Source: Macrostomum hystrix (taxonomy: Eukaryota > Animalia > Platyhelminthes). From it: a stretch of DNA of 64,000 nucleotides. The stretch is taken from assembly GCA_950097015.1 (NCBI GenBank), contig CATNEN010000024.1, positions 5,394,001 to 5,458,000 of the forward strand, given 5' to 3'. Within the stretch, counting starts at the first letter, position 1. Every line of letters begins with the position of its first letter. The translations under genes were made by a program, and so were the position numbers. Shown piece after piece: positions 36,900-56,652 of the stretch. Below the pieces are notes generated by a model, which saw nothing but the letters and a program-made list of their open reading frames with translations, did no database searches and was not told the DNA's origin.

Positions 36900-38825
36900 A
36901 TGCTTTCTCAGGCTCAAAAAACGCAACCGCCATCATCACAGCAGCAACAGCAGCCGCCTCACTCGTCGCAGCAACAGCAGCAGCAGCAGCTTCAGCCTGT
37001 GCTCTCTCGTTACCAGCTATCTGAGCAAGTGGACCTTGTAGATGCTTATAACCTGAAGCAAGTAGACTTGACCAGGGCCAAACAGCCGCTTTGGCTAGTG
37101 AAGGTGCCAAAATATCTGGACGAATTGTGGCGAAAGGCTCGCGACAAGCAGGAAGTCGGCTATTTAGTTACAACTGAAGGTGGAGGCGACAGCGGCAGCG
37201 GAAAGGGTGTCAACTTGAGACCTTCGGAGGCCGCGTTGTCTATGGCCGATCGGCCAGAATTGATTCCTCGCGAGCACTCATTTATTATTGATCCATCTGG
37301 CGGTGGCCGTAATCAACAGACTCTGCTGGTGCTGCAGGTCTGTCCTCTTCTAGGGACCGAAGGTTATTAGGCTTAGCGATGTATTTAATAATAGATAATA
37401 TTTGGTGGGAGAAGGACCTTATTAAACAGTAGAACTACCAATGGGGAAAACCAACTTTTTTCGCGCATCCTTTGAAACAAGAAACAAGTCGCCAGCTCTT
37501 CGGGCCGTCGAGATATTCAAGGGTTCTGATCAGATTTTTCCCATAAGCGCTAGTGTATTTCATTCGCACTGCGAAATCGGCCTTTAAAATTTATCTAGAT
37601 AGACTGCTGGACCTTCAAAGGCTACAACAGGTGGAACTATGCCACTATGGACATCCTGACTCAAATGTTTTCATTTCAGATTTCAATGATAAAGCATAAA
37701 TATTAGGCGCAGCTCAACCACATGACATTCTGGGGAAGGAATTCTTCCCTGCTACTAAAACGGGCAGCAAAATGGCTTGGTAGTCCTACTGTTAATTCCC
37801 TTGTACACCATCCGCAGCAGGAGGAGTTCACCCGGAGAAGGACCCTATTTAATCCCTTGTACACCATCCGCTGCAGGAGGAGTTCACCCGCCGGTCCGGT
37901 CAGCCGGACGGTCAGTTGGAGTCGCGAGCCTCTCTCTACGGCACCGTGCGTCGTCGAGTCGAATGTCGACCGCAGAATCCGGCTGATCATATGCGCCTGA
38001 AGCGGCATCAGATGGAGCAGAGTCGCAGCGGCAAGTTTCAGGCTTCCCAGCTGGATAAGCAGGTACAATTTGATAGAAATAGCAACGACACCTTAACCCC
38101 AGTTGTTCTTGAGGTGGATTACTAGCCGCAGCTATAGCCGGGGCCAGCCATCTAAATCTCCTTTCCAACTAATTCTGGCGCCAGTCTTGTTTAGTGCTCA
38201 GAAGCTTTAATCACTCGGCTAAAACCTACAAATCACTGCAAAGTTGGACTTATTACTTAATGGTCGGGGGTTCGAATCCCGACTCCACTTGCAAGACACT
38301 TGACTCTGCATTGCTTCAGTCAACCTACCTGCCTGTCATTTATTTATCGTGCGGTAAATGTGCCGTACCTGTGCGGTCTAGAATCATAGTGTTTAACTTA
38401 CCTGTCGGAGTAACCAAGTTGCCCTTAATAATTCGCCAATTCTCAAGGTACAGCCGCGCAAGCCGATGGTGTCCCACGCCGGCATCGATGCGATGAAGCA
38501 GAAGCGCAAAGATGAGGGCAAGAAGCTGCGCGACTCGCGCGATGCTGTTCAGGCAAAGCTATTCGTCGCCTTCGAGAAGCATCAGTACTACAGTGTACGA
38601 GATCTGGTTAACATCACGAAGCAGCCCCTGCCGTTTCTCAAGGACATTCTTAAAGAGATCGCAGTGCACAATAACCAGGGCCCCCACAAAAACATGTGGG
38701 AACTCAAGCCTGAGTACAGACACTACAAGCGACAGCAGTCTGCTGATGACGGCGAAGGCGGTGCCGGCGCTTCCAACTCGATGGAGGACACGTCCGGTGA
38801 TGCCGACGATTTGCAAGTTGTGTGA
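36900..38825 (+). CDS. GTF2F2: General transcription factor IIF subunit 2 (RAP30); join(36900..37337,37877..38062,38448..38825), ~333 aa
   Basis: DLTRAKQPLWLVKVPKYLDELW, IPREH, RVECRP..HMRLKR, and winged helix LFVAFEKHQYYSVRDLVNITKQP..LKDILKEI..HKNMWELKPEYRHY. Both introns phase 0. Confidence 0.95.
37427..37680 (-). mobile_element. Truncated inverted copy of the CAGTAG-TIR element (GTF2F2 intron 1)
   Basis: Starts CAGTAGAACTACCAATGGGG. GGCTACAACAGGTGGAACTATGCCACTATGGACATCCTGAC is the reverse complement of the internal segment in the other two copies. Confidence 0.6.
38240..38340 (+). mobile_element. SINE family B fragment (GTF2F2 intron 2)
   Basis: GGGGTTCGAATCCC B box followed by GCAAGACACTTGACTCTGCATTGCTTCAGT. 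Confidence 0.65.
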
Positions 38826-38909
38826 AAACTTTATATGCTAAGTACAACTGCTTCAGTGCATTTTTCTCAGTTTCCGCTTCTGTCTGTTAGCGCTGGTTGC
38901 CCTTTTAGT

Positions 38910-39190
38910 GGGTCGCCGGTGTCCCCCTTGCTCTCCCTGTCCCTCAGATAATCCCCTTATGCCCCCTTGCTCTCCCTGTCCCTCAGATGATCCCCTTATG
39001 CCCCCTTGCTCTCCCTGTCCCTCAGATAATCCCCTTATGCCCCCTTGCTCTCCCTGTCCCTCAGATAATCCCCTTATGTCCCCTTGCTCTCCCTGTCCCT
39101 CAGTTAATCCCCGGTGTCCCCTTTGCTCTCCCTGTCCCTCAGTTAATCCCCGGTGTCCCCCTTGCTCTCCCTGTCCCTCACTGGGTCGCC
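38910..39190. repeat. 39-bp C-rich minisatellite, ~7 copies, GTF2F2 3' UTR
   Basis: Unit CCCCCTTGCTCTCCCTGTCCCTCAGATAATCCCCTTATG. Confidence 0.95.
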
Positions 39191-39394
39191 GATGTACCTT
39201 CGTTCTTTATGTTTATCAGTGAAAAGCGTTGCGCTAGCTTATTATTCAGATAAAGCTATGTGAAAGAATAAGATTTACATTGCAAGCGTTGAAATGTTTT
39301 ATTCCTACATGAATTAAATTCATGTGGTGTTGTTTTTTTATTTTTAACCGTCTGACTTGAATTTAAAATTTTACGATTACACAACCTCGCTTTA

Positions 39395-39400
39395 AATAAA
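39395..39400 (+). terminator. Probable polyadenylation signal of GTF2F2
   Basis: AATAAA followed by a GT/T-rich tract (GTGTTCATTGTTGTTG). Confidence 0.6.
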
Positions 39401-39601
39401 AACAGTGTTCATTGTTGTTGCATTGTTGCATTGTTCTTTTTCTTTTCTTTTCTATGCCACGAGAAATCTGCAGAAGGAAACGAGGAGGCAGGAACGAAGA
39501 GAAGTTTTACAAATAGCTAACTGCCGAATTTTTTTTCCAGCTTTAGCCGACGGTTCGGACTTGCGCTTTGAAAATAACAGAAGCCCAGCACTTGATTGAG
39601 T

Positions 39602-42600
39602 ATGCTTCGCCCTGAAGTCAAGCGTTCGGGCCTGTCGTCAGCATCAGCAGCCGGACAACTAGCGGCTGCTCCAGTAGCGCCGAACGGTGCAGCCTCCACA
39701 GCCAGTGCCGACAGCGACACCGCCGACATTCAGAGTATGTCGGCCCGGCTGCAGCAGATTCGGCACTATCTGCGCCAGGCGGCCGCTCTCAGGCGCTCAG
39801 TTGGCGGCCGGCAGGGCCGTAATCTGGACAGCCTCATGCAGCAGCTGGCCGAGCAGGAGAGCCAGTGCGCCGCCGCCCTGGAGGCCTGCCTGAGACTCGA
39901 CGCCGGCGTCGATTTAGCCGTCGAAAGGCAGTCGGATGGCGAGCGAGGCAGCGAAGACGAAGAGCAAGATGACGATCAGAACGGAGTCAATGGCGCTGTT
40001 GACGACGACGAAGATGAGGATGAGAAGGAGCAGGCCGCTGTGGCTGCAACCGAGCGGCCAACCATCGAGTCCAAGCTTGGCCGGCATCCGGACACGGCCG
40101 ACACTTCGCAGTGCGGCGACGGAGATGTCGATCGCGACAGCGGAGAGGAGCTGGAGGCTCTGCGCAATCAGCGAGATCTTCTGCGCCGCATGTTGCAGGT
40201 GAGTCTTATTTGAGTATTGGCGTTTGCTGGATTCTGAATCGAACATTTCCTACCCCAGCTGATGCTAACACCCATTTTACAGCTAGAGTGGGCTGTGATT
40301 CGAACTCCCGGCCTACCGGTCAGAAGTCCGAAACCACTAGGCTACAAGCTCCCCGGATAGCATTGTAGTTAAAAATAGGAGACAGAAAACTCCACTTCCA
40401 CTGTCTGATCAGTTGACTAACTTTCCTGCTCACTAGCCACAGTCGTATCTACAGCAGCAGCAGCAGCATCGCCAGTTGCCGGCTCTCCCTTCTCAGAGTG
40501 AGCAAAGCGCAGCGGAGGCTGTCCTGTTAGCCAGGCGCCTAGCTGAGCTGGAGTCCCGCCGAGTCCGCCTTGACCGGACGCTGGAAGAGCTAGCCGCTCT
40601 GCGGGCCGAGGCATCAACTACTAGCACGGAGGTGCAGGCGGCGGCCGAGTCGGCCAGCGCCGGCCACACCGCTGGCGAAGCCGCCCAGCTGCTTGGCGCC
40701 ATGGAGACCATGCAGGCCAGGCTGGACCGGCTGCGCACGGTGCGCGATCGCCTCGCCGGAGTTCGTCAACTAGCTGACGATTATCGACGATCTGCGTTGT
40801 TGGCCAACGATTCAGCGACCGTTGAAAGTGATGTCGACGTAGCCCAAAGAGAGTTGCACCAGCTGGTTCGCGAACGTCAGCGCTTAGTCGATCTGCAGAC
40901 AGAACTAGAGCGGCTGCACTCGGCCGCTGGTCGCGATGCCGCAGCGCTGGCCAACGACACCTTCGATGAGGACGACGATCCGAATTTAGAGGCCGGCGGC
41001 GGGCAGGAGGAAGAGGAAGAAGAAGAGGCTGCCGGAAACGATGCCGGAAACGATTCAGATAGCGATGGCGACGGCGACGATTCGGCGACATTCCCGGCTG
41101 GTCTGGAAGCGCGGGAGCGACAGCGTCGGGCGCAGATCCCGACCGCCGCTGCGACTCCGGGGGTTGAAGCTGGACTCGGCAGTGGCGCTCAAGTTGCAGT
41201 TTGCCTTCAGCAGTGCTGCGCCTTGCTGACCGCTCAGCAGCAGCAGCTGCATCGGCTCACTGAGCAGGTGAACAATCTGCAGCTGAGACAGCAGCAGCCA
41301 GTGTATCAGAATCAGAGCTATCCGGGCTACTGGTGGGGATTCTGGGGCCAGCATCATCCTTATCAACAGCTGCCTCAGCAGCAGGGCAAGTGCGGCTTTT
41401 GCTGCTCCTGTTCTGGTCAGCGGCTGACAGTGTCTGCCAATCAAGCTACTGTTGGTTCGCAGACCGACCTGACAAGTGCTGCCGCCGCCGAATCCGCCGA
41501 GTCTGCGTTAGCGCCGGCCATGTCCCAGTCGGAGGCGGAAAATTCCGATGCTCCCCAGCAGGGCTTCGATCGACTGCGCGAGAGCATCTACTCTGAAGTG
41601 GCCGCCGTCATCTCACAGAATGAGTCGCGCCCGCACTTCTTAGTTGAGCTGTTCCGCGAGTTGCAGCTGCTGTCCACGGATAGTCTTCGCCAGCGGGCTC
41701 TGCAGCAGCTGCAGCGGCTGGTCAACGGCTATCTGGCATCCAGGCCGCCTTGGCTGCGCGACAGCGACGATGGTAGCGATGTCGATGGCAACCGTGTCGA
41801 CAAGAAATCCGCAGCTGCAGTTGTGGATGTTGAACAGACACCATCGGAGAGTTACGCCACAACCTCGGCAACAGGGGAGGCTGCCGGAGATGCCGGTGCT
41901 GGTCGCCGTCGATCCAGCGGCAGTGTGTCACCGTTTGCTCGCGATTCATTAGGCGATACAGCCATTAACTTAGATCGGGCTATGAGCCAGATTCGTCTGC
42001 AGCAACAGCAGCAGCAACATCGCCAGCATCTATTATCGTCGTCTTCTTCCGGCGGACGAGCCGCCGTTGCCGCCGGCGCCTCAGCCAGCGGGCGAATCGA
42101 CGCCGAGCGACTGGACCGTCAGGTGAAGTCGGTGGTGCGGCATCTTATCCCGGCGCTGCGGACCCACGCCCAGGAGGTGGCCACGCCGCAGCTGCTGGCC
42201 TGGGTGGCCGATTTGGCTCTGCAACGCGTCCAACTGTTTCTGGTGAGTGGTTTAAGTTTTATTGAGAATTTAATTGCAGCCCCTTTAACAGTAGGACTAC
42301 CAAGCCATTTTGTACCAAGGAGAGGGGGGGTTTTTTAGGTTGGAGACTGATTGGTTGACACACTAGGCGATGGTGTACTGTGGTTGAGCTGTGCCTAATA
42401 TTTAGGCTTGATCAGTGAAATTGGAGAAATTCGCGTCAGGGTGTCCATGGTGGCCTATTTGCACCTGTTGTAGCCCTTGACGGTCCAGAAAATCCGTCTA
42501 TATTAAGGTAGGTGACCACCGAAGACGAAGGTGATGCAGGCGCATTCGGGTGACATGCTGAAAAATTTTGAAGTCCTGGCAAGGCCGCACCGAGGCGCAG

Positions 42601-43702
42601 TGCTAATTCGTGCATAGGGGTTTGTGAGACACACTAGCGCTTACAGGAAAATCTGGCCATTGAATATCTCGACGTTCTGAAGAACCCGCGAGCTGATTCT
42701 TGTTTCTAAAGATGCGCAACAAAAAGTTGGCCCGTGTTCTTGGGTTTCGTGTGCTTGCGTTGCTCCGCTCGGGTGCAGCACAAATAATTGTCTAGGGGAG
42801 AAATCCCCCTTGGCAGTTCTACTGTAAAGTTAGTATAAAATGTTAATTAAAGTTAAAAAATGTCTACTAACCGTATGTTACCAAGGATCCTACTGCCGGC
42901 GATGACGTCAGCGATGCCGTGAGCAGCGCCGCTTCATCCACCTCTGGCCGCGACGCGGCCTTATCTCAAGACAGCGAATTCGACAGGTTCTTTGCCCGCC
43001 AGCTGGCCGGCCTCCTCACCGACTCGCTGGCCAGATTTTGCGGTCATCGCCTTGTCGACTGCACCGAGGATATGCTGGTGGATCTCAGCGAGTTGCTTTT
43101 CAACGAGTTGGCCTTCTTTCGACTAGTCAACAATTTGGATGTCAATGGCGACGATGATGAAGGCAATGACGCGGTCGGCGATAGACAAAATAAGGCCGCC
43201 GACCGATTCGCTGCCGTTGATGATACAGACAGCGTGGCCACGGAAGAAGCGTCTGGCGTCGAGAAAGGCGAAGGCAAGGGCGAAGAAAATGATGGCGACA
43301 GCGAGGAAGATAAGGGCGATGGTGAAGATGCTAATGGCGACGGCGAGGAAGATGAGGGCGATGGCGAGGATGCTAATGGCGACGGCGAGGAAGATGAGGG
43401 CGATGGCGAAGGCTCTGATGCTGGAACAGCGTCTGCCCAGCCAGTGGACGATTATTCCGACGATTTCGAAGAGGCAGCTAACAGTAGCGACGCAGAAAAG
43501 TTGCCTAAAGTTGACCAGATGCCCGACGGACAACAGCGAGACGGCGAAGGCGAGGGCGAGACTAAACAAGTAAAAAAAGTTTAGCCCTTGTTATTTATTT
43601 CGTTTTTTTTTCACAATTGACATCTTAATAAAAAATGACTAACGTAAATTGATTTTTCAGGTTTCCATGACAACGGTTGATAAGCCGAACGGAGATGCCT
43701 AG
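39602..43702 (+). CDS. PCM1: Pericentriolar material 1 (centriolar satellite scaffold); join(39602..40198,40437..42242,42886..43569,43661..43702), ~1040 aa
   Basis: ARLQQIRHYLRQA, LRNQRDLLRRMLQ, and PCM1 C-terminal blocks FDRLRESIYSEVAAVISQNESRPHFLVELFRELQLL and FFARQLAGLLTDSLARF..DLSELLFNELAFFRL. All introns phase 0. Confidence 0.9.
40270..40345 (-). mobile_element. tRNA-like SINE head fragment (PCM1 intron 1)
   Basis: Reverse strand reads TGTAGCCTAGTGG...GAGTTCGAATC, with the same A box as family B. Confidence 0.55.
42289..42824. mobile_element. 536-bp non-autonomous DNA element, 16-bp TIR, TAA flanks (PCM1 intron)
   Basis: CAGTAGGACTACCAAG...CTTGGCAGTTCTACTG (14/16 match), with TAA on both sides. 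Two further copies in the window. Confidence 0.8.
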
Positions 43703-44382
43703 GCAAATGATGCGAATGTAATGTTTTAGTTTTTAATTTATAATGTGCTTCTTGATTGTTTTTATAAATAAGCAAATTAATTTGACTGCTGCTAATAATT
43801 TCAGACAGATCTACCGATTATTTCTATTACGAGTACTTTTTTTATTTTTATGCCCAAAATTCACAAATTTGACACTTTTATATGCTGCAGCTCTTTTGTT
43901 GCTGCACTTTAAACAATTCCGTCCATCATATTCAAGTTTTTACTATTTAATTCGATAGACTAGACTTGGTCAGATTAAATTGAGTTCCATTCGAAACCCA
44001 CGTTAGTTAGTTAGTTTATTAAACAATTAAATGTTGCGGTCTGCTAGTCGGCCGGAAATTGTGTTTAAAATGGTCAAAAAATTATTGACTTATAGAAAGA
44101 CTTTGCTGTAAGTTTTTAGCTGTATCTATGCAGCTGCGACTGTGGTTATTTTGTAATAATTATCCCTACGCAAATATATTTTTACTACATTCCTAACTTT
44201 TATATTCCACTTTTTATGCCCCTCTTTCTTTCTTCGATGGCTCATTCACATATGCCTTATATTCATGTGCCTACACAGTAAGTGGCTAGTTTATGCACTT
44301 TTTCTAGAAGGATCTAGCGTGACATTGTGAGCTTTTTTGCATCATGTACGTGCTTTGATAACAAGGTCAAATAATCATCGGC

Positions 44383-44755
44383 GTTCCCCAACCCCACCCA
44401 TCTCAGTGTACATCCCAGGTCCCCAACCCCACCCATCTCAGTGTACATCCCAGGTCCCCAACCCCACCCATCTCAGTGTACATCCCAGGTCCCCAACCCC
44501 ACCCATTTCAGTGTACATCCCAGGTCCCCAACCCACACTTATTTCTTATCTCAGTGTACATCCGAGGTCCCCAACCCAACCCATTTCAGTGTACATCCCA
44601 GGTCCCCAACCCCACCCATCTCAGTTTACATCCCAGCCCCAACCCACACTTATCTCTTATCTCAGTGTACATTTGAGGTCCCCAACCCAACCCATTTCAG
44701 TGTACATCCCAGGTCCCCAACCCACACTCATCTCTTATCTCAGTGAACATCCGAG
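44383..44755. repeat. 35-bp C-rich minisatellite (CCCCAACCCCACCCATCTCAGTGTACATCCCAGGT), ~10 copies
   Basis: Directly visible. Confidence 0.93.
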
Positions 44756-45104
44756 TTCACAAGCATGGTTTTAAGCACACGGAAGTCTGTTGCAGTGTAG
44801 ATATCATATTTCACGTAGGGTGTTAGCATTAGGTCTTTATTCCTCTATCACTAAATGCCTCTATCTACCGATTTTTACAAAACTCTGCTGCCTTCTTTTC
44901 TATAATTTCTTCTTTTTTAGCCTGTCAAGTTTGATGTACGGATTGTAACTGTGAAGGAAGTTTAGAGCGAACAAACTTGTCATGCGCTTCGTGTCATTTT
45001 CCTTTTGTTCCCGCTTTTTGTTAACGCATTGTGCACGCCTTTATGGGTATCTCATGGAGATGCAGTGATTTTACTTATTCATTTGAAAATTTTACTGTAA
45101 TCAG

Positions 45105-48100
45105 GTATGCTCTCCTACCACTTCATATCCTCAGACGTAGTCTGTCAGCCTTCCATATCCTCAGGTATGGTCTGTCACCCTTCCATATCCTCAGATATGG
45201 TCTGTCAGCCTTCCATATCCTCAGGTATATAGACTGTTACCCTTCCATATCCTCAGGTATGGTCTGTCACCCTTCCATATCCTCAGATATGGTCTGTCAG
45301 CCTTCCATATCCTCAGGTATATAGACTGTTACCCTTCCATATCCTCAGGTATAGTCTGTTACCCTTCCATATCCTCAGGTATAGTCTGTTACCCTTCCAT
45401 ATCCTCAGGTATAGTCTGTTACCCTTCCATATCCTCAGGTATATAGTCTGTTACCCTTCCATATCCTCAGGTATAGTCTGTTACCCTTCCATATCCTCAG
45501 GTATAGTCTGTCACCCTTCCATATCCTCAGGTATAGTCTGTCACCCTTCCATATCCTCAGGTATGGTCTGTCACCCTTCCATATCCTCAGGTATGGTCTG
45601 TTACCCTTCCATATCCTCAGGTATATAGTCTGTTACCCTTCCATATCCTCAGGTATAGTCTGTTACCCTTCCATATCCTCAGGTATAGTCTGTCACCCTT
45701 CCATATCCTCAGGTATGGTCTGTCACCCTTCCATATCCTCAGGTATAGTCTGTTACCCTTCCATATCCTCAGGTATATAGTCTGTTACCCTTCCATATCC
45801 TCAGGTATATAGTCTGTTACCCTTCCATATCCTCAGGTATAGTCTGTTACCCTTCCATATCCTCAGGTATAGTCTGTCACCCTTCCATATCCTCAGGTAT
45901 AGTCTGTCACCCTTCCATATCCTCAGGTATGGTCTGTCACCCTTCCATATCCTCAGGTATGGTCTGTTACCCTTCCATATCCTCAGGTATATAGTCTGTT
46001 ACCCTTCCATATCCTCAGGTATAGTCTGTTACCCTTCCATATCCTCAGGTATAGTCTGTCACCCTTCCATATCCTCAGGTATGGTCTGTCACCCTTCCAT
46101 ATCCTCAGGTATGGTCTGTTACCCTTCCATATCCTCAGGTATATAGTCTGTTACCCTTCCATATCCTCAGGTATAGTCTGTTACCCTTCCATATCCTCAG
46201 GTATAGTCTGTTACCCTTCCATATCCTCAGGTATATAGTCTGTTACCCTTCCATATCCTCAGGTATAGTCTGTTACCCTTCCATATCCTCAGGTATAGTC
46301 TGTCACCCTTCCATATCCTCAGGTATAGTCTGTCACCCTTCCATATCCTCAGGTATGGTCTGTCACCCTTCCATATCCTCAGGTATGGTCTGTTACCCTT
46401 CCATATCCTCAGGTATATAGTCTGTTACCCTTCCATATCCTCAGGTATAGTCTGTTACCCTTCCATATCCTCAGGTATAGTCTGTTACCCTTCCATATCC
46501 TCAGGTATAGTCTGTTACCCTTCCATATCCTCAGGTATGGTCTGTTACCCTTCCATATCCTCAGGTATATAGTCTGTTACCCTTCCATATCCTCAGGTAT
46601 AGTCTGTTACCCTTCCATATCCTCAGGTATAGTCTCTTACCCTTCCATATCCTCAGGTATAGTCTGTTACCCTTCCATATCCTCAGGTATGGTCTGTTAC
46701 CCTTCCATATCCTCAGGTATATAGTCTGTTACCCTTCCATATCCTCAGGTATAGTCTGTTACCCTTCCATATCCTCAGGTATAGTCTGTCACCCTTCCAT
46801 ATCCTCAGGTATAGTCTGTCACCCTTCCATATCCTCAGGTATGGTCTGTCACCCTTCCATATCCTCAGGTATGGTCTGTTACCCTTCCATATCCTCAGGT
46901 ATATAGTCTGTTACCCTTCCATATCCTCAGGTATAGTCTGTTACCCTTCCATATCATCAGGTATAGTCTGTTACCCTTCCATATCCTCAGGTATAGTCTG
47001 TTACCCTTCCATATCCTCAGGTATGGTCTGTTACCCTTCCATATCCTCAGGTATATAGTCTGTTACCCTTCCATATCCTCAGGTATAGTCTGTTACCCTT
47101 CCATATCCTCAGGTATAGTCTCTTACCCTTCCATATCCTCAGGTATAGTCTGTTACCCTTCCATATCCTCAGGTATGGTCTGTTACCCTTCCATATCCTC
47201 AGGTATATAGTCTGTTACCCTTCCATATCCTCAGGTATAGTCTGTTACCCTTCCATATCCTCAGGTATAGTCTGTTACCCTTCCATATCCTCAGGTATAG
47301 TCTGTCACCCTTCCATATCCTCAGGTATAGTCTGTCACCCTTCCATATCCTCAGGTATGGTCTGTCACCCTTCCATATCCTCAGGTATGGTCTGTTACCC
47401 TTCCATATCCTCAGGTATATAGTCTGTTACCCTTCCATATCCTCAGGTATAGTCTGTTACCCTTCCATATCATCAGGTATAGTCTGTTACCCTTCCATAT
47501 CCTCAGGTATAGTCTGTTACCCTTCCATATCCTCAGGTATGGTCTGTTACCCTTCCATATCCTCAGGTATATAGTCTGTTACCCTTCCATATCCTCAGGT
47601 ATAGTCTGTTACCCTTCCATATCCTCAGGTATAGTCTCTTACCCTTCCATATCCTCAGGTATAGTCTGTTACCCTTCCATATCCTCAGGTATGGTCTGTT
47701 ACCCTTCCATATCCTCAGGTATATAGTCTGTTACCCTTCCATATCCTCAGGTATAGTCTGTTACCCTTCCATATCCTCAGGTATAGTCTGTTACCCTTCC
47801 ATATCCTCAGGTATGGTCTGTTACCCTTCCATATCCTCAGGTATATAGTCTGTTACCCTTCCATATCCTCAGGTATAGTCTGTTACCCTTCCATATCCTC
47901 AGGTATAGTCTGTTACCCTTCCATATCCTCAGGTATAGTCTGTTACCCTTCCATATCCTCAGGTATGGTCTGTTACCCTTCCATATCCTCAGGTATATAG
48001 TCTGTTACCCTTCCATATCCTCAGGTATAGTCTGTTACCCTTCCATATCCTCAGGTATAGTCTCTTACCCTTCCATATCCTCAGGTATAGTCTGTTACCC

Positions 48101-48575
48101 TTCCATCTCCTCAGGTATAGTCTGTTACCCTTCCATATCCCCAGGTATATAGTCTGTTACCCTTCCATATCCTCAGGTATATAGTCTGTTACCCTTCCAT
48201 ATCCTCAGGTATAGTCTGTTACCCTTCCATATCCTCAGGTATAGTCTGTCACCCTTCCATATCCTCAGGTATAGTCTGTTACCCTTCCATATCCTCAGGT
48301 ATAGTCTGTTACCCTTCCGTATCCTCAGGTATAGTCTCTTACCCTTCCATATCCTCAGGTATAGTCTGTTACCCTTCCATATCCTCAGGTATAGTCTCTT
48401 ACCCTTCCATATCCTCAGGTATAGTCTGTTACCCTTCCATATCCTCAGGTATAGTCTGTTACCCTTCCATATCCTCAGGTATAGTCTGTCACCCTTCCAT
48501 ATCCCCAGGTATATAGTCTGTTACCCTTCCATATCCTCAGGTATATAGTCTGTTACTCTTCCATATCCTCAAGTA
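45105..48575. repeat. 30/32-bp satellite (ACCCTTCCATATCCTCAGGTATAGTCTGTT), ~110-115 copies, with higher-order structure
   Basis: Directly visible 3.5-kb array. Confidence 0.98.
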
Positions 48576-48626
48576 TAACTCACCTGACCTGACCTCACGT
48601 CACCTGAACTGCATTCATTGTTCCAG

Positions 48627-51221
48627 CCGGCTCGCGGCAAGAGAGCTATCGATGACAGCCGTAGCGGCAGCGGCGATTGCGACGCCAAACGCCGTAAGCC
48701 AACAAGAACATTGTCGATTTCGCATGTTCCTACCCCGTACGGCGACAAGACATTGTTCTCCGGCTTGCTATTCGCTCTCTCTAAGCACGAGCCAGGTCGC
48801 GCCGCCCTTGCCGACTGCATTCGCCGAAACGGTGGCCAAGTTTTAAATAGAATTCAAGCAGTATCGGCTGACTATTTTGTACAGAGTTACAACTGCGAAT
48901 TCGATGACGCATTCGGTGAGGAAAGTGTCGGCGCCCACTCTGGCAACACCGTGCCAGCCTGCTACGTCACGGACTGCGCCGCTAGGGGCTCTCTGCTTGA
49001 TGTGCGAATGCATGCGCTTGGCTGGTCTGATGCCCGCGCTGGCGGGGATCAGAGGTGAGATCCACCTATACTGACAGTTCTTTTATGGTAAAGCAGAGAA
49101 GCGAAAAGCGACCAAGCTCTTACATCAAAGGTACCGAGTTCGAATCCTCAGTTGAACGGCAGCATTCTTTAGTCTAAATTTGCTCCTTACAAAGTAAAGC
49201 ACCAAGGCGCGATTGAAATCCTTGCTATAGTCAGAGATTCGCTGATATTAGACCGATATGGCAAAAGCCGTGGTCGTTTCGGGGTGTCTAATGGCAAAAA
49301 CCACGAAAATGGACACAATTTTTCTCCTCACAAAATTTCATCATGCAATCATATTAGCTATTTTTGGTGATAATATAAAAAAATTTAGTCTTTAGTCTTT
49401 CACGAATCTCATGCTTGCGAAATCTCGGCCTTGTACTAGCAGGACTTGAGCAGGCTCAGTTAAAAGCAGACAATATCCGTTGAAAGGCAGCTTAATCACT
49501 GGGTCTCGTCATTTCTACTGCCAGTTTATGAAGCAACAATACTCCTGATTATTGCTGGAGCATGAGAGTTTGAGAAGTTAATAAAAAGACAGGAACATTC
49601 TGTTAGCTGTAAATTATACTGTTATATCCTCTTGTTTCCTATTAAAAGAGTGAGAATGTATGAGAATGAGAATAAAATGTCTAGTCCTTGACATCGTTGC
49701 AGCAACTTTTCAGTTCTATTGGTCCTCAGGTTGACACAAGCCACATTTTTATTTTAGTTCGCGTGGTTAATTGTGCTTTGGTGTAAAAGCAAATCAGTAA
49801 ATTCTTTAACTGGCTTTCCTTACAACAAAAATTGGTCCCACCAGTGCCAGTCCTGACTTCGCAGACGACTCAGGTCTGGCCAGCACCTTGGCCTGCCTGC
49901 TGCCGGCTTGGCCGAGTCCCCTGCCCCAACTGCTAGAATCGCAGTGCCAGCCGCAGTGCTACGCCGAATTTCTCGCCTACCCGGATCGTTTAAGGCGAGG
50001 CGAATCGCCTCCTAATCTACGCCTGGTTCGCATTCGCCGATCTTGTATTAAAATTAAGGACAAGCCTAACTCAACTATTGATAAACGAGTTGAAGAAGAT
50101 TTGTGTGAGTTTCTGGAAGCCTCCACCGGCTGCGCCGTGACTTCAACTGAGTCGACCAATGAGCTAACTTGGCGCCCAGTTGGGTCGTCTCAGGGTCGCC
50201 TGCGCATCGGCCGCTACGACTATGATATTGGCCTGCGTAGGCGTGCTGGCCAGTATCAGCTGGAGGTTAGTGGTGCCACTTTAGAGTAATTCTAAAAACA
50301 CAGGATATATATGCACATCTTCAACAGTAGAAAGACCGGGGGGCATTTCAAATACCCTCTTTTATTTTTTTCTGTATCTTTATCGCCAAGAAAATCCGGA
50401 ACACGAACTAAAATTTTCCGCTCTATCCGATGAAACAACTTCCAGAATCACAAAACATCAACATCGTCGAGATATTCAACGATTCTCGTCGGGGTATCTG
50501 GTGGCAAAAACCACAAAATAGGCAAAAAATAATTCGTCACAAAATTTTATCTTTCACCGAAATCGGTCATTCGGTTTGGGAGCAATCAGGCAGTGGGTAT
50601 TTGAAATACACCACTGGTCTTTCTTACCCAGGGGGATATAGCGTGGTCTATCGTGGTCGCGATAGCCCTCCTAACCTGCAAGTTTGTTATGCCACCCTGC
50701 AGGCCATGGATCTCATAGCGGCCCTGACAGATTCTGTGCACAATCCGGCTACGGAATCAGCCACTCTTGCTCTCCTCACCGATTGTCACCTGTACGAGCG
50801 GGGCGTCGCTGAGCCAATCTACGGTAGAGGCACCGGCGATCGTTGCTGCGTAGTTTCTACCATAGAGAGCGGCGGCAGCGGGCGCCAGGTGTCCACGCAT
50901 CATCTGTTAGGCACATCGCTGCACGAACTATTGCACTGCTTCGGCTTGGATCACTGTCCCTATGCTAATTGTGTGCTGAATGCCTACTGCGATGACAGCG
51001 TGAAGTCGGGCAGTGCCGAAGCCAATCTGCCTTCGCTGTTAATCTGTCCAATAGATCTGCGAAAGCTATTCTCGGTAGTATGTTGCGCGCATTCAATATC
51101 AGACTCAAATAGCTTAGCTGGCTATTTTCAAAGACTGGCTAACCTACTGAAACGACTGGGATTACCGGACAATGCGCGACTGGCTGACAAAATGCGTCAA
51201 CGGACTGCCGCTCTGATCTAG
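48627..51221 (+). CDS. BRCT-domain + archaemetzincin (M54) zinc metalloprotease; join(<48627..49054,49845..50265,50703..51221); no in-frame ATG at the 5' acceptor
   Basis: BRCT-like LFSGLLF..LADCIRRNGGQV..CYVTDCAARGSLLD; AMZ N-motif WPSPLPQLLESQCQPQCYAEF; QLE|AMDLIAAL restored across the intron; zinc motif HELLHCFGLDHC-x4-C and ICPIDLRKL. Introns are GT-AG, phases 2 and 0. Confidence 0.8.
50329..50624. mobile_element. ~296-bp MITE in intron 2 of the BRCT-protease gene; related internal sequence at ~28105..28250 and ~49255..49345
   Basis: Imperfect ~30-bp TIRs AGAAAGACC..CATTTCAAATACCC / GGGTATTTGAAATAC..GGTCTTTCT. The internal AATTTTCCGCTCTATCCG..AACTTCCAGAAT segment recurs at ~28110. Confidence 0.7.
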
Positions 51222-51339
51222 TAGCTTTACTAGATTTCATAGAAAATGATTCAGTTTTTTATCAGCAGAAACTTATTTTTGAAATGTTTATCAAGTGCCT
51301 CTTTTTATGTTCTATTATTATGACTGACAGAATGTTTTT

Positions 51340-51350
51340 AATAAAATAAA
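51340..51350 (+). terminator. Probable polyadenylation signal of the BRCT-protease gene
   Basis: Overlapping AATAAA hexamers ~120 bp after the stop codon, followed by T-rich sequence. Confidence 0.6.
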
Positions 51351-51572
51351 ATAAAATATTATTTTTTTATACAAAAGTAACGGCTTTTTATAGTTTTATT
51401 ATTTATTCTTTGGTTAAGACTTAGTAGAGAAATACCTAAGAACAAAGTATTAATATGATACTAAGTGCCATATTAGTACATGCTTTATTGCTACATTTAA
51501 CCTAATTCATGCTCATAGTTCCAGTGTTAATCTACTGCTGCTTGCATAGTGCTTAAGCTAAAGGTCTAGTCC

Positions 51573-54500
51573 ATGCTGTCCCTGTCAGCTATGAATAGCA
51601 ATCAGCCCGTAGCCGCGCCGTCGCCCGCCTACTCGGCGACTAGTAGTGCAGCTGCAGCTCTGGCTATTCAGCATCCTCAATCGCCGGCCTCCGTTGGCGG
51701 CGCCTCCTCTGTGACGTCCTCCGACGCCTGTCTGTCCATTGTGCACTCGCTGATGTGTCACAGGCAGGGCGGCGAGTCCGAGGGCTTCAGCAAGAAGGCC
51801 ATCGAGTCGCTGGTGAAGAAACTGAAGGACAAGCGCGACGAATTGGACGCGTTGATTCAGGCTGTGACCAGCAACGGCAACCAGCCGACCAAGTGCGTCA
51901 CCATACCTAGGACTCTGGATGGCAGGCTGCAGGTCAGCTTTCAGTCCTTGCTTATCATTCTCATCTATCATTACTGCTTTGTTTACTCCTTGGAAACAGC
52001 TTGTCCGAACATCCTAGTCTTCGGACTGGTTTTTAGCACCTGGCAGCTCAGCCTGTTTAGCAGCTGACATGCCAGTCTGTTTATCACCTGACATCCCAGT
52101 CTGTTTAGCACCTGACATCCGAATCTGTTTAGCACCTGACATCCCAATCTGTTTAGCACCTGACATCCCAATCTGTTTAACACCTGACATCCCAGTTTGT
52201 TTAGCACCTGACAACCCAATCTGTTTAGCACCTGACAACCCAATCTGTTTAGCACCTGGCATCCCAGTCTGTTTAGCACCTGACATCCCAATCTGTTTAG
52301 CACCTGACATCCCAGTCTGTTTAACACCTGACATCCCAGTCTGTTTAGCACCTGACATCCCAGTCTGTTTAGCACCTGACATCCCAGTCTGTTTAGCACC
52401 TGGCAGCTCAGTCTGTTTATCACCTGACATCCCAGTCTGTTTAACACCTGACATCCCAGTCTGTTTAGCACTTGACATCCCAATCTGTTTAACACCTGAC
52501 ATCCCAGTCTGTTTAGCACCTGACATCCCAGTCTGTTTAGCACCTGACATCCCAATCTGTTTAGCACCTGACATCCGAATCTGTTTAGCACCTGACATCC
52601 GAATCTGTTTAGCACCTGACATCCCAATCTGTTTAGCACCTGACATCCCAGTCTGTTTAGCACCTGACATCCCAGTCTGTTTAGCACCTGACATCCGAAT
52701 CTGTTTAGCACCTGACATCCCAATCTGTTTAGCACCTGACATCCCAGTCTGTTTAACACCTGACATCCCAGTCTGTTTAGCACCTGACAACCCAATCTGT
52801 TTAGCACCTGGCATCCCAGTCTGTTTAGCACCTGACATCCCAGTCTGTTTAGCACCTGACATCCCAGTCTGTTTAACACCTGACATCCCAGTCTGTTTAG
52901 CACTTGACATCCCAATCTGTTTAACACCTGACATCCCAGTCTGTTTAGCACCTGACATCCCAGTCTGTTTAGCACCTGACATCCCAATCTGTTTAGCACC
53001 TGACATCCCAATCTGTTTAGCACCTGACATCCCAATCTGTTAACACCTTGAAAAAAGACCGTCTTTTTATTACCTGAAATCCGTCTTACTAAACCGCAAA
53101 CAGGTGGCCGGCCGCAAAGGCTTTCCGCACGTGGTCTACGCCAAAATCTGGCGCTGGCCAGATCTGCACAAGAACGAGTTGAAGCACACCCGCCAGTGCC
53201 AGTACGCCTTCGAGTTGAAGCAGGACGCAGTGTGCGTCAATCCCTACCACTACGAGCGGGTGGTCAGCCCCGGGCTGGAGTTCTCTTCGCTCAGCTTGGG
53301 CGATGACGACGACGCGGCCTCTCAGTCTGGCTTCGCTTCGCCTATGCTCCAGCAGCAGCAGCAGCAGCATCACATTCAGCAGCAGCCCCCGGCCCAGCCG
53401 CTTCCTCACCAGCTGCATCAACAGCAGCAGCAGCAGCAGCAGCAGTCAATGCTACAACAGCCTCAGCATCACATGCATCATCATCACGGCAACAATCAGC
53501 AGCATCACGGCAGCTGGGTTGCTCAGCCAATGCCGCCGCCCCAGCTTCATCAGCATCATCCGCATCAGCAACAGCAAGCACAGCAGCAGCATCCTCAGCT
53601 GCCACCGCTGTCAGTGGCCACTCCCTGGGCCGGGACAGGCGCCCTTGACCGCGGCAGCGTCTCCTGCCAGCAGCCGCTGACCCGGCAGCCGCACCCGGTC
53701 CACTGGTGCACCATCACTTATTATGAGCAGGCTGAGCAGGTTGGGGAAATGTTTAAAGTGCCCTACCAGCAGGCCAAGGTAATCATTGACGGCTACACCG
53801 ACCCGTCGTCCAGCCACCGCTTCTGCCTCGGCCAGCTGAGCAACGTGCACCGGAGCGAAGTGTCCGAGCGGGCTCGGCTGCACATCGGCAAAGGCGTCAA
53901 GCTCACGATGCGCGACGAAGGCAACGTCTGGCTGGAGGTCCTGTCCGACTATTCCGTCTTTGTTGGCACCTTCTACCTGGACAGAGAGGCCGGCCGTCCG
54001 CCTGGCGATGTTGTGCACAAGATCTATCCTGGCACCCACATCAAGGTGAGACTGCATTGTGCGAACCCTTCTCTTACCAGCGAATGGTGTACTTGCTCAC
54101 TGTCTGCTGATCACCATTCACCATTCACGCCACTTTCTATTCACTTGCCAGTCACTCTCACCGCACCATTCACTCGCCAGTCACTCTCACCGCATTCATC
54201 ACTCGCCAGTCACTCTCACCGCACTATTCACTCGCCAGTCACTCTCACCGCACTATTCACTCGCCAGTCACTCCCACCGCACTATTCACTCGCCAGTCAC
54301 TCCCACCGCACTATTCACTCGCCAGTCACTCTCACCGCACTATTCACTCGCCAGTCACTCCTACCGCACTATTCACTCGCCAGTCACTCTCACCGCACTA
54401 TTCACTCGCCAGTCACTCCCACCGCACTATTCACTCGCCAGTCACTCCCACCGCATTCATCACTCACCAGTCACTCTCACCGCACTATTCACTCGCCAGT

Positions 54501-56652
54501 CACTCTCACCGCACTATTCACTCGCCAGTCACTCCCACCGCACTATTCACTCGCCAGTCACTCTCACCGCACTATTCACTCGCCAGTCACTCCCACCGCA
54601 CTATTCACTCGCCAGTCACTCTCACCGCACTATTCACTCGCCAGTCACTCCCACCGCACTATTCACTCGCCAGTCACTCTCACCGCACTATTCACTCGCC
54701 AGTCACTCTCACCGCACTATTCACTCGCCAGTCACTCTCACCGCACTATTCACTCGCCAGTCACTCTCACCGCACTATTCACTCGCCAGTCACTCTCACC
54801 GCACTATTCACTCGCCAGTCACTCTCACCGCACTATTCACTCGCCAGTCACTCTCACCGCACCATTCACTCGCCAGTCACTCACCGCACTATTCACTCGC
54901 CAGTCACTCTCACCGCATTCATCACTCACCAGTCACTCTCACCGCACTATTCACTCGCCAGTCACTCCCACCGCATTCATCACTCGCCAGTCACTCTCAC
55001 CGCACTATTCACTCGCCAGTCACTCTCACCGCACTATTCACTCGCCAGTCACTCTCACCGCACTATTCACTCGCCAGTCACTCTCACCGCACCATTCACT
55101 CGCCAGTCACTCACCGCACTATTCACTCGCCAGTCACTCTCACCGCACTAATCACTCGCCAGTCACTCTCAACGCACTAATCACTCGCCAGTCACTCTCA
55201 ACGCACTAATCACTCGCCAGTCACTCTCGATCATACTTGCTAGTCACTCATTCTGGCACTCATTACTAAAGTCTTAGTCTGCTCCTGTTTTCTCCGGAAT
55301 TTCTATTCCTCTGGTCTGTTCGATGTGAATGCTGGTTTAGTCACAATAGTTTCTATTCAAAGTAAGTTTTCCGAACTAGGTCTAGGCTGGCAATTCAAAG
55401 TTTGCCTTAATAGTTAAGAAAACAACAGAAACATTTACCTATGAAGAAATCCAACTCTCTGGTCTCATCAGAACAGTCCCATTGTCTCTCTCCGGTGTGT
55501 GGCTATAGAGGAAAGCCCCTTTGGTTCCTTTGTCACGCCTTCCGGATGTGCGGTCCCTTCCTGTGTAGAACTGGTGGTGATAGACAATGTGCCTCAGCCT
55601 CTGGGCGAAAATATTTACCGGCTGGTGACAACTTTGCCTTCAGAGCGTGGCTTTGACATTGATGTCTATCCCAGCTTCATCAACCTTTAAATATACTAGC
55701 TATCTGAATTCGCTTTCCAGTTCATATTTCTAGCTATAAATAAAAGTGCTCGTTAACGTGAATTATTTTGCGAATTAGTTTTTATCGTTCTCAGTCCTAA
55801 CACTTCTAAGTCGATGCTATTTTCTAAAGCTTAAAATTCCTAAGAGAGCTTGTAGTAACCCTGTATTTTTGAGCTTACGATTTTTTTACTGAGAGTTCCT
55901 CAGAGACTATTTGCATCTTTGAGCAAGGCTTTGTGTCTTTTCTCCACAGTCTACGGACTGAACAGCTGTACACAGCCTTTAGAAGCGCCAAGTGTCTAAG
56001 TGTCATTTCCATCTATTTTCTATCCGGTTCCAGATGCTATCTTAAAAAGTTCCTAATGCTAGTACTTGTGCCATAGACTAAATATGTTTACTTAACTGCA
56101 CGTCACTTGCAGTGACAGTTCAGGTAACGCTCTGTACTTTAATAGACAAAGTAGAACTTGAGTTTGCTAAGGAAATAATGCGATTCTTTCACCCAGGTGT
56201 TCGACATTCTGCAGTGCCATCGGGACATGCGCGCCCAGGCTATTCAGGCGCAGCACACGGCCACCGCCACCGCCGCCGTTGTGGCCGGAGGTCCCGCCCC
56301 GGCGGCCGCCATCCCGTCGGCTAATCCCATCGCCCTGCAGGCCGGCGCAGGCATCGGTGTCGACGAGCTTCGCCGCCTCTGTGTTCTTAGAATGAGCTTC
56401 GTCAAGGGCTGGGGCCCGGACTATCCGCGCAAGACCATCAAGGAGACGCCCTGCTGGGTTGAGGTCCAGCTTCACAGGCCTCTGCAACTGCTGGACGAGG
56501 TGCTGCAGAGCTTGCCGCTCAACGATTTGAAGCCGACTCGGCACTTCCTGCAGCAGGGTGGCGCCGGCGCCGCGTCCGCCAGTCCCAAACTGCCCAGCCA
56601 GCAGCAGCAGCCGCCTCCACCGCCTCAACCTGGCCTGCACCAGCAGCACTGA
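51573..56652 (+). CDS. SMAD4: SMAD4 (Co-Smad/Medea); join(51573..51932,53104..54045,56197..56652), ~585 aa
   Basis: MH1 [46 protein letters not shown]|[10 protein letters not shown]; MH2 [50 protein letters not shown]. No C-terminal SSxS. Both introns phase 0. Confidence 0.97.
52025..53042. repeat. 24-bp minisatellite (CCCAGTCTGTTTAGCACCTGACAT), ~42 copies, SMAD4 intron 1
   Basis: Directly visible. Confidence 0.97.
54140..55240. repeat. 29-bp minisatellite (ACTCGCCAGTCACTCTCACCGCACTATTC), ~38 copies, SMAD4 intron 2
   Basis: Directly visible. Confidence 0.97.

Follow-up and report, generated by a model that had tools for sequence, protein, structure and literature searches.

A stretch of 64,000 nucleotides from the flatworm Macrostomum hystrix (contig CATNEN010000024.1 of assembly GCA_950097015.1, positions 5,394,001 to 5,458,000; hereafter the window, with all positions counted from its first letter) contains, at 48627-51221, a single expressed three-exon gene. 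It encodes a protein of ~456 residues, which comprises a basic tail, one BRCT domain, a linker with an E..PQ motif, an M54 (archaemetzincin) metzincin domain and two C-terminal helices. The gene is the syntenic ortholog of Macrostomum lignano BOX15_Mlig026686g4 (456 aa, henceforth P0001) and a divergent member of an old, widespread and little-noticed BRCT-archaemetzincin subfamily. On balance, we favor the view that its product is an active nuclear zinc peptidase, which the BRCT domain would target to a partner in chromatin or DNA metabolism. Throughout, whole-protein analyses used P0001 in place of the window protein, the exons of which were searched singly.

Gene structure and the 5' end of the mRNA

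The three exons join in frame, in phases 2/1/0, to give 455 codons and a stop, and at every exon boundary on the plus strand an AG precedes and a GT follows the exon. To this can be added transcript data, in the form of contigs from four public runs, of unrecorded kind, which were placed on 48580-51560. One contig of ~1430 nt in each of the runs X4, X5 and X6, all belonging to a single study from which the entire splice evidence comes, covers exons 1, 2 and 3 while omitting two stretches of exactly 790 nt and 437 nt, both bounded by GT..AG, at 49054/49845 and 50265/50703. Because these contigs lack both introns, they can derive only from RNA, despite the unrecorded kind of the runs. Hence, both junctions proposed from the letters alone in an earlier note on this DNA are exact in the spliced contigs, and the BRCT exon is indeed spliced to the protease exons, single contigs covering all three. 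The same contigs stop at 51259/51260, leaving a 3' untranslated region (UTR) of ~38 nt. The resulting features, including the domains and motifs discussed below, are as follows:

48625..48626, plus strand: AG acceptor at which the mature mRNA begins, a putative trans-splice site; the contig match starts at 48626
48627..49054, plus strand: exon 1, basic N-terminal tail and BRCT domain (frame, Pfam, spliced contigs; 56% identity to P0001)
48687..48701, plus strand: KRRKP basic cluster, resembling a nuclear localization signal (NLS) (motif location; basic stretches recur in relatives)
48750..49007, plus strand: BRCT domain (Pfam BRCT_2, AlphaFold model of exon 1, Foldseek)
49055..49844, plus strand: intron 1, GT..AG, with a 266-nt insertion that has no counterpart in other contigs (joint 49052/49843, cut +2, in X4/X5/X6)
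49845..50265, plus strand: exon 2, conserved linker and N-terminal half of the metzincin domain (frame, contigs; 64% identity to P0001)
49936..49956, plus strand: ESQCQPQ, the local form of the family E..E..PQ linker motif (alignment A2; E and Q invariant or nearly so)
50266..50702, plus strand: intron 2, GT..AG (joint 50263/50701, cut +2, in X4/X5/X6)
50331..50625, no strand assigned: high-copy repeat in intron 2, resembling a miniature inverted-repeat transposable element (MITE) (inverted arms of 21 nt at 50340-50360 and 50592-50612)
50703..51221, plus strand: exon 3, C-terminal half of the metzincin domain, C-terminal helices and stop (frame, Pfam, contigs; 62-64% identity to P0001)
50922..50957, plus strand: HELLHCFGLDHC, zinc-binding and catalytic motif with the first Cys (H, E, H, D, H and C invariant in A2 and kept in the window)
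50970..50981, plus strand: CVLN, second Cys and Met-turn position, here Leu (alignment A2)
51045..51056, plus strand: CPID, third Cys, with Asp where a fourth Cys is expected (CP[VIL]D is common among 132 homologs)
51222..51260, plus strand: short 3' UTR to the transcript end (spliced contigs, three runs)

P0001 emerged as the single close relative in an index of 5.8 billion proteins. Annotated as 'partial' and without a start Met, it is collinear with the window exons at the identities listed above, and its gene has the same three-exon layout, flanked by a PCM1_C gene and a SMAD (MH1/MH2) gene. The order PCM1-like, BRCT-protease and SMAD4-like, all on one strand, is kept in the window (36900-56652) and in M. 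lignano (L002); in the former, the SMAD4-like open reading frame (ORF) starts at 51573, ~300 nt after the end of the protease transcript at 51260. These data bear directly on an alternative explanation, by which the gene would be an artefact, i.e., neighboring genes, or a gene and a pseudogene, joined by eye, or contaminating protist sequence. Such suspicion could be fed by the lack of an in-frame ATG, by the otherwise protist distribution of the family and by the repeat-filled state of both introns. However, it must be set against the single ~1430-nt contigs that cover the three exons in three runs, the canonical intron ends, a 5' end like that of flatworm trans-spliced mRNAs and the recurrence of the same three-exon gene between PCM1-like and SMAD genes in M. 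lignano. An artefactual fusion was rejected given the X4, X5 and X6 contigs spanning all exons, and the alternative as a whole is extremely improbable.

No in-frame ATG is present upstream of the BRCT domain, and exon 1 opens at a splice acceptor. In the X4, X5 and X6 contigs the match begins with the acceptor G at 48626 and is preceded by 22 further 5' letters which are non-genomic, in that they do not occur on the window. The spliced leader of M. lignano is 35 nt long and ends in TTGCATG (PMC8629364), and in M. cliftonense and M. hystrix the leader shows high conservation relative to that of M. lignano, with both said to 'likely contain the final ATG' (PMC10468722). The 5' extension of the mRNA is as expected for Macrostomum spliced-leader trans-splicing. 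Further, an ATG placed at 48626|48627 yields M-P-A-R-G-K-R in the frame of the gene, such that a start codon donated by the leader is the simplest reading, and we infer that translation starts at the AUG which ends the spliced leader. A search of the window with the M. lignano leader gave no match, hence it holds no spliced-leader RNA gene. Lacking a genomic ATG, the gene is either truncated or labeled 'partial' by gene finders, which carries a lesson for annotation.

In M. lignano, the genomic sequence TCAATTTTTGCTG (NIVC01000677.1, L002 7987-8006) directly precedes the annotated partial coding sequence. It resembles TCAATTTATTGCATG, with which the spliced leader ends, and contains a CTG that shares the frame of the first codon; this leader-like sequence could be an assembly indel, a chance occurrence or something else.

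The metzincin and BRCT domains

The HELLHCFGLDH motif at 50922-50954, reported as intact in the earlier note, is so: it conforms to the HEXXHXXGXXH pattern and includes the catalytic Glu. More generally, the window protein retains all 16 residues that are invariant in the family alignment, among them the catalytic Glu, the three His, the Asp of GLDH and three Cys. At the level of profiles, exon 3 matches the archaemetzincin structure 2x7m at E=1e-3, and a profile of 15 full-length members matches AmzA structures at E=2.5e-6. The fold was assessed on an AlphaFold model of P0001, made with 102 homologs (pLDDT 82, pTM 0.87), the best structural matches of which are four AmzA entries with a Foldseek probability of 1.0. 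In VIA comparisons with this model, the alignments with AmzA reach Z 14.0-15.1 over 157-174 residues, with an rmsd of 2.4-4.5 (2.4-2.9 for the best three), and cover nearly all of each archaeal chain, whereas the adamalysins follow at Z 10.7, ~4 units below. The counterpart of exon 2 in the model aligns with the N-terminal sheet of AmzA.

The N-terminal domain is recognized by Pfam BRCT_2 (PF16589) at 30.7 bits against a cutoff of 27.3, over residues 42-127 of exon 1 of the window gene. An AlphaFold model of this exon, built with an alignment of 18 BRCT regions of the family, has a core with pLDDT >90, and the top 50 matches retrieved with it by Foldseek from the PDB are all BRCT domains with probability 1.00, which bears out the expectation that the N-terminus folds as a BRCT domain. 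These 50 include TopBP1 BRCT4/5, XRCC1 BRCT2, PARP4, REV1, RAP1, the pre-60S factor Pescadillo and Chs5, and the Rev1 BRCT superimposes on the P0001 model at Z 9.8. The family BRCT profile, in turn, matches Dpb11, Mdb1, PARP4, TopBP1, Rap1, Rad4, Crb2 and REV1 at E 1e-8 to 1e-6. Because the profile reaches so many BRCT proteins, the label 'RAP1-type' given to the domain in the earlier note is too narrow, TopBP1, XRCC1, PARP4 and REV1 being matches equal to or better than RAP1. The NLS-like KRRKP stretch noted upstream of the domain is present at 48687-48701, and several relatives likewise carry a basic stretch upstream of the BRCT domain (PKKGK in P0003, PKRKRAKKK in P0036 and RARKRARL in P0022).

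A Cys in BRCT helix 3 (Cys118 of P0001, within DCAARG in the window) is invariant in the 15 full-length members as well as in all 18 BRCT regions, which is unusual for a BRCT domain; it may contribute to the contact with the protease or bind a metal.

Family breadth, known relatives and genomic setting

An exhaustive phmmer search with P0001 against 1.84 billion representatives returned 132 matches, and an N-terminal BRCT domain, as detected by a BRCT model built from the family, is coupled to M54 in at least 17 representative clusters. The named sources among them are Acrasis kona (Heterolobosea), the apusomonads Thecamonas trahens and Manchomonas, Mastigamoeba (Amoebozoa), MAST-4 stramenopiles and Bolivina (Foraminifera), the remaining clusters being metagenomic. 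The BRCT-M54 proteins are collinear end to end and have the E..E..PQ linker motif in common. A tree built on the M54 domain gathers every BRCT-bearing member into one clade with 98% support, with a fungal-type clade and a third group lying outside it. A long stem of 1.59 changes per site leads to the two Macrostomum sequences, the placement of which inside the BRCT clade is unresolved. The fusion has thus been kept in at least five eukaryotic supergroups and one animal genus, a taxonomic range defined by the exhaustive phmmer search together with 30 name look-ups, in which no other named animal protein with BRCT-M54 surfaced. A profile of A2 run against the 5.8-billion-protein index recovered just two of A2's own members, low-complexity words having swamped the candidates. 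The ESM Atlas gave no large cluster with both BRCT and M54, and the nearest neighbors in it, by features and by shape, are animal M54 (AMZ) clusters.

In the earlier note, no described protein was known to have this architecture. This stands as regards the searched literature, which makes no mention of a BRCT + archaemetzincin or Peptidase_M54 architecture or of the M. lignano locus tag, and which on BRCT, metalloproteases and DNA-protein crosslinks yielded general reviews only. It does not hold for the databases, where the architecture is present under automatic names in the clusters counted above.

Comparison with known systems helps to place the protein. Archaeal AmzA (3lmc, 4axq/3zvs, 2x7m; MEROPS M54, PF07998) has the same metzincin fold and the HExxHxxGxxHC-x4-C block in common with it; however, AmzA is a single-domain protein of ~160-195 residues, to which the window protein adds the BRCT domain, the conserved linker and the two C-terminal helices. 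Vertebrate AMZ1 and AMZ2 are eukaryotic M54 proteins of similar size. The best ESM Atlas shape match of the P0001 model is a chordate 'Archaemetzincin-2' cluster (TM 0.59 over 319 residues within 50-454), a match which extends beyond the M54 core and, to the extent that the model is a guide, suggests that vertebrate AMZ may share the linker and part of the N-terminal region. In the animal AMZ clusters compared, PF07998 is the only annotated domain and no BRCT domain is listed; further, the model of the window BRCT domain alone did not retrieve the chordate 'Archaemetzincin-2' cluster from the ESM Atlas, leaving a hidden BRCT domain in AMZ2 unsupported.

Closest in architecture are the protist proteins, such as those of A. 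kona (KAL0479352, named 'archaemetzincin') and T. trahens (XP_013754807, named 'BRCT domain-containing protein'), which are collinear with the window protein over their full length. They have in common with it the BRCT domain, E..PQ linker, M54 domain, C-terminal helices and 16 invariant residues and fall in the same M54 clade, but are only 21-34% identical to it, keep the Met of the Met-turn and mostly keep R/K in the BRCT pocket. No experimental study of a protist BRCT-M54 protein was found in the searched literature. P0003 (source run SRR26493809), the closest of these proteins, and the metagenome-derived members are encoded by single uninterrupted reading frames on their contigs, as opposed to the three exons in Macrostomum.

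The surroundings of the gene are rich in repeats. The word depth of the intron 2 element in transcriptome contigs reaches thousands at 50380-50580, which indicates that its family is very abundant and transcribed or co-transcribed. A misleading ORF of 263 aa (50430..51221) takes its ATG from within this MITE-like element and continues into exon 3, so the remark in the earlier note that the ORF track is contaminated by MITE sequence was apt.

In intron 1, contigs of X5, X6 and X1 join 49131 to 49398 and omit 266 nt (49132-49397) with TA..TC ends. The omitted piece carries a 30-nt copy (49279-49308) of part of the intron 2 repeat (50489-50518), and resembles a MITE-type insertion which this haplotype carries and others lack.

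Upstream of the protease gene the window has ~4.9 kb of mostly minisatellite sequence, including a 30-bp array at 45101-48577 (~114 copies, 94% matches) which ends 49 nt upstream of the putative trans-splice acceptor. Two further minisatellites are found at 52032-53048 (24 bp, 42 copies), overlapping the 3' end of the SMAD4-like ORF, and at 54137-55228 (29 bp, 38 copies).

Functional reading and its alternatives

The domain content allows a functional proposal. The protein would be an active zinc peptidase working in the nucleus, where the basic tail and the BRCT domain would place it. The BRCT domain would act as a targeting or partner-binding module, bringing the protease to a partner associated with chromatin or DNA metabolism, with the contact potentially made via a phosphoprotein, poly(ADP-ribose), DNA or another BRCT domain. 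In the model, a single body of high confidence, the BRCT domain seems to pack against the protease, in which case it might also gate the active site. A DNA-damage or telomere role, as put forward in the earlier note, is plausible from the known associations of the two domains, and is attractive because the BRCT profile matches replication and repair proteins best.

Several observations weigh against this proposal. On the side of the protease, Pfam Peptidase_M54 (PF07998) scores exon 3 alone at 18.3 and full-length P0001 at 16.4 bits, below the cutoff of 24.4; relatives linked to P0001 at E 1e-9 to 1e-21 do pass it (P0002 31.9, P0004 25.9, P0005 24.5 and P0013 24.5 bits). The protease fold of the window protein is itself predicted through the model of the M. 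lignano ortholog as a proxy. The Met of the Met-turn is replaced by Leu (CVL) in both the window and M. lignano, while the other 14 BRCT-bearing members of A2 have Met; the Leu pointed out in the earlier note (CVLN, 50970-50981) is hence real and specific to the Macrostomum lineage. In addition, the last Cys of C-x4-C-x-M-x17-C-x-x-C, the signature of the Cys4 structural zinc site of archaemetzincins (PMC3427221), is Asp in the window protein, which has the other three (C368, C373 and C398) and a spacer of 22 rather than 17 residues before the last position; the Met-turn Leu, this Asp and the longer spacer equally set it apart from archaeal AmzA. The CPID ending, however, is not unusual: nearly all of the 132 homologs read HExxHxxGxxHC-x4-C-x-M followed by CP[VIL][CD], and CPxD is common enough among them to be regarded as a frequent variant in eukaryotic relatives and not a defect peculiar to the window gene. 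Several archaeal AmzA proteins are inactive in vitro on many substrates, and the aminopeptidase activity of AMZ1/2 'has to be confirmed' (PMC3427221). That an archaemetzincin can be an active protease follows from the archaeal AMZ-tk, which shows zinc-dependent casein degradation and self-cleavage (PMC4681839).

These features raise the alternative of a catalytically dead or weakened pseudo-protease serving as a scaffold or cofactor, with the Macrostomum lineage drifting away from catalysis. Three changes within A2 at near-invariant positions are specific to Macrostomum and found in both species (Met-turn M->L, A316->G and R419->Y); along with the very long Macrostomum stem and the existence of non-catalytic M54 proteins, e.g., CarG of Myxococcus (PMC3427221), they are what such drift would leave behind. 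Against this, both species retain the catalytic Glu, the three zinc-binding His, the GLDH Asp and three of the four Cys, and the frame and motifs have been kept across two species that differ at ~40% of residues. In other metzincins, replacement of the Met-turn Met mainly lowers stability and does not abolish activity. As all catalytic and zinc-binding residues persist despite this divergence, a pseudo-protease is improbable, and an active peptidase is the better account of the M54 domain.

On the side of the BRCT domain, the difficulty with the proposed targeting role lies in the phosphate pocket. The Ser at the end of strand 1 (in ALS) is present in the window, but the R/K of the DD-x-R-L motif, which aligns with the phosphate-binding Lys of Mdb1 'THKF', appears from the sequence to be Ala. 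By alignment alone, this position is R or K in 15 of the 18 family members and Lys in M. lignano, and by the same alignment the Lys/Arg at the start of helix 2 that defines the phosphopeptide-binding subclass of BRCT domains is lacking in the window protein. Taken together, the compact model and the Ala in the pocket would also be compatible with a BRCT domain whose part is structural or regulatory.

An alternative built on this is that the protein is a housekeeping peptidase, aminopeptidase-like as reported for AMZ1/2, with the BRCT domain as a fixed element of structure or regulation or as a docking site for a partner unrelated to DNA damage. Uses of BRCT domains outside damage responses are known, in ribosome biogenesis (Pescadillo) and in the exomer (Chs5), both of which are among the structural matches of the window domain. 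The whole P0001 model is one compact body, the helix-3 Cys is invariant in all family members, the window protein lacks the basic pocket residue and the nearest ESM Atlas neighbors are animal AMZ clusters, all of which would sit well with such a function. Conversely, it is proteins of DNA replication and DNA repair that the BRCT profile matches best in sequence, the basic NLS-like tail recurs before the BRCT domain in several members, and the AMZ1/2 activity on which the comparison leans is weakly established (PMC3427221). We consider this housekeeping role possible but unlikely, and retain the nuclear, BRCT-targeted peptidase as the favored reading.

Two further points against that reading concern the start of the protein. 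The 22 extra 5' letters are no more than putative spliced leader, and at the nearest AG of the M. lignano copy (L002 8004-8005) an ATG donated by the leader would be out of frame.

A broader version of the favored reading would see the BRCT-archaemetzincins as ancient nuclear metzincins, possibly dating from the last eukaryotic common ancestor, in which the BRCT domain delivers the protease to damaged or replicating chromatin, e.g., to clear away proteins that are trapped or crosslinked there, in parallel to SPRTN/Wss1, and which were lost in most animals while being kept in the highly regenerative macrostomids. We regard this extension as speculative and distinctly unlikely as a whole. With SPRTN, Wss1 and GCNA the protein would have only a concept in common, namely the union of a zinc protease with a module of the kind usual in chromatin and DNA-repair proteins. 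SPRTN and Wss1 possess a SprT/WLM zincin domain, whereas the window protein is an M54 metzincin, and the Pfam search of the window exons and P0001 gave no match to SprT or WLM. The targeting modules of the SPRTN/Wss1/GCNA proteins are PIP, UBZ, SHP and SIM, and these are absent from the window protein. The likeness is therefore one of analogy and not of membership.

Archaemetzincin structures have been solved, yet a biological role has not been established for these proteins in archaea or, as AMZ1/2, in humans. The conserved BRCT fusion hints at where an archaemetzincin works and with which kind of partner, and represents a first lead in this regard; what makes the gene interesting is that this lead, on proteases whose role is not known, can be tested. 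As M. lignano is an existing experimental model for regeneration and stem cells, the gene is amenable to such tests. Should the enzyme indeed act on chromatin, the few nuclear proteases of repair would be joined by a metzincin.

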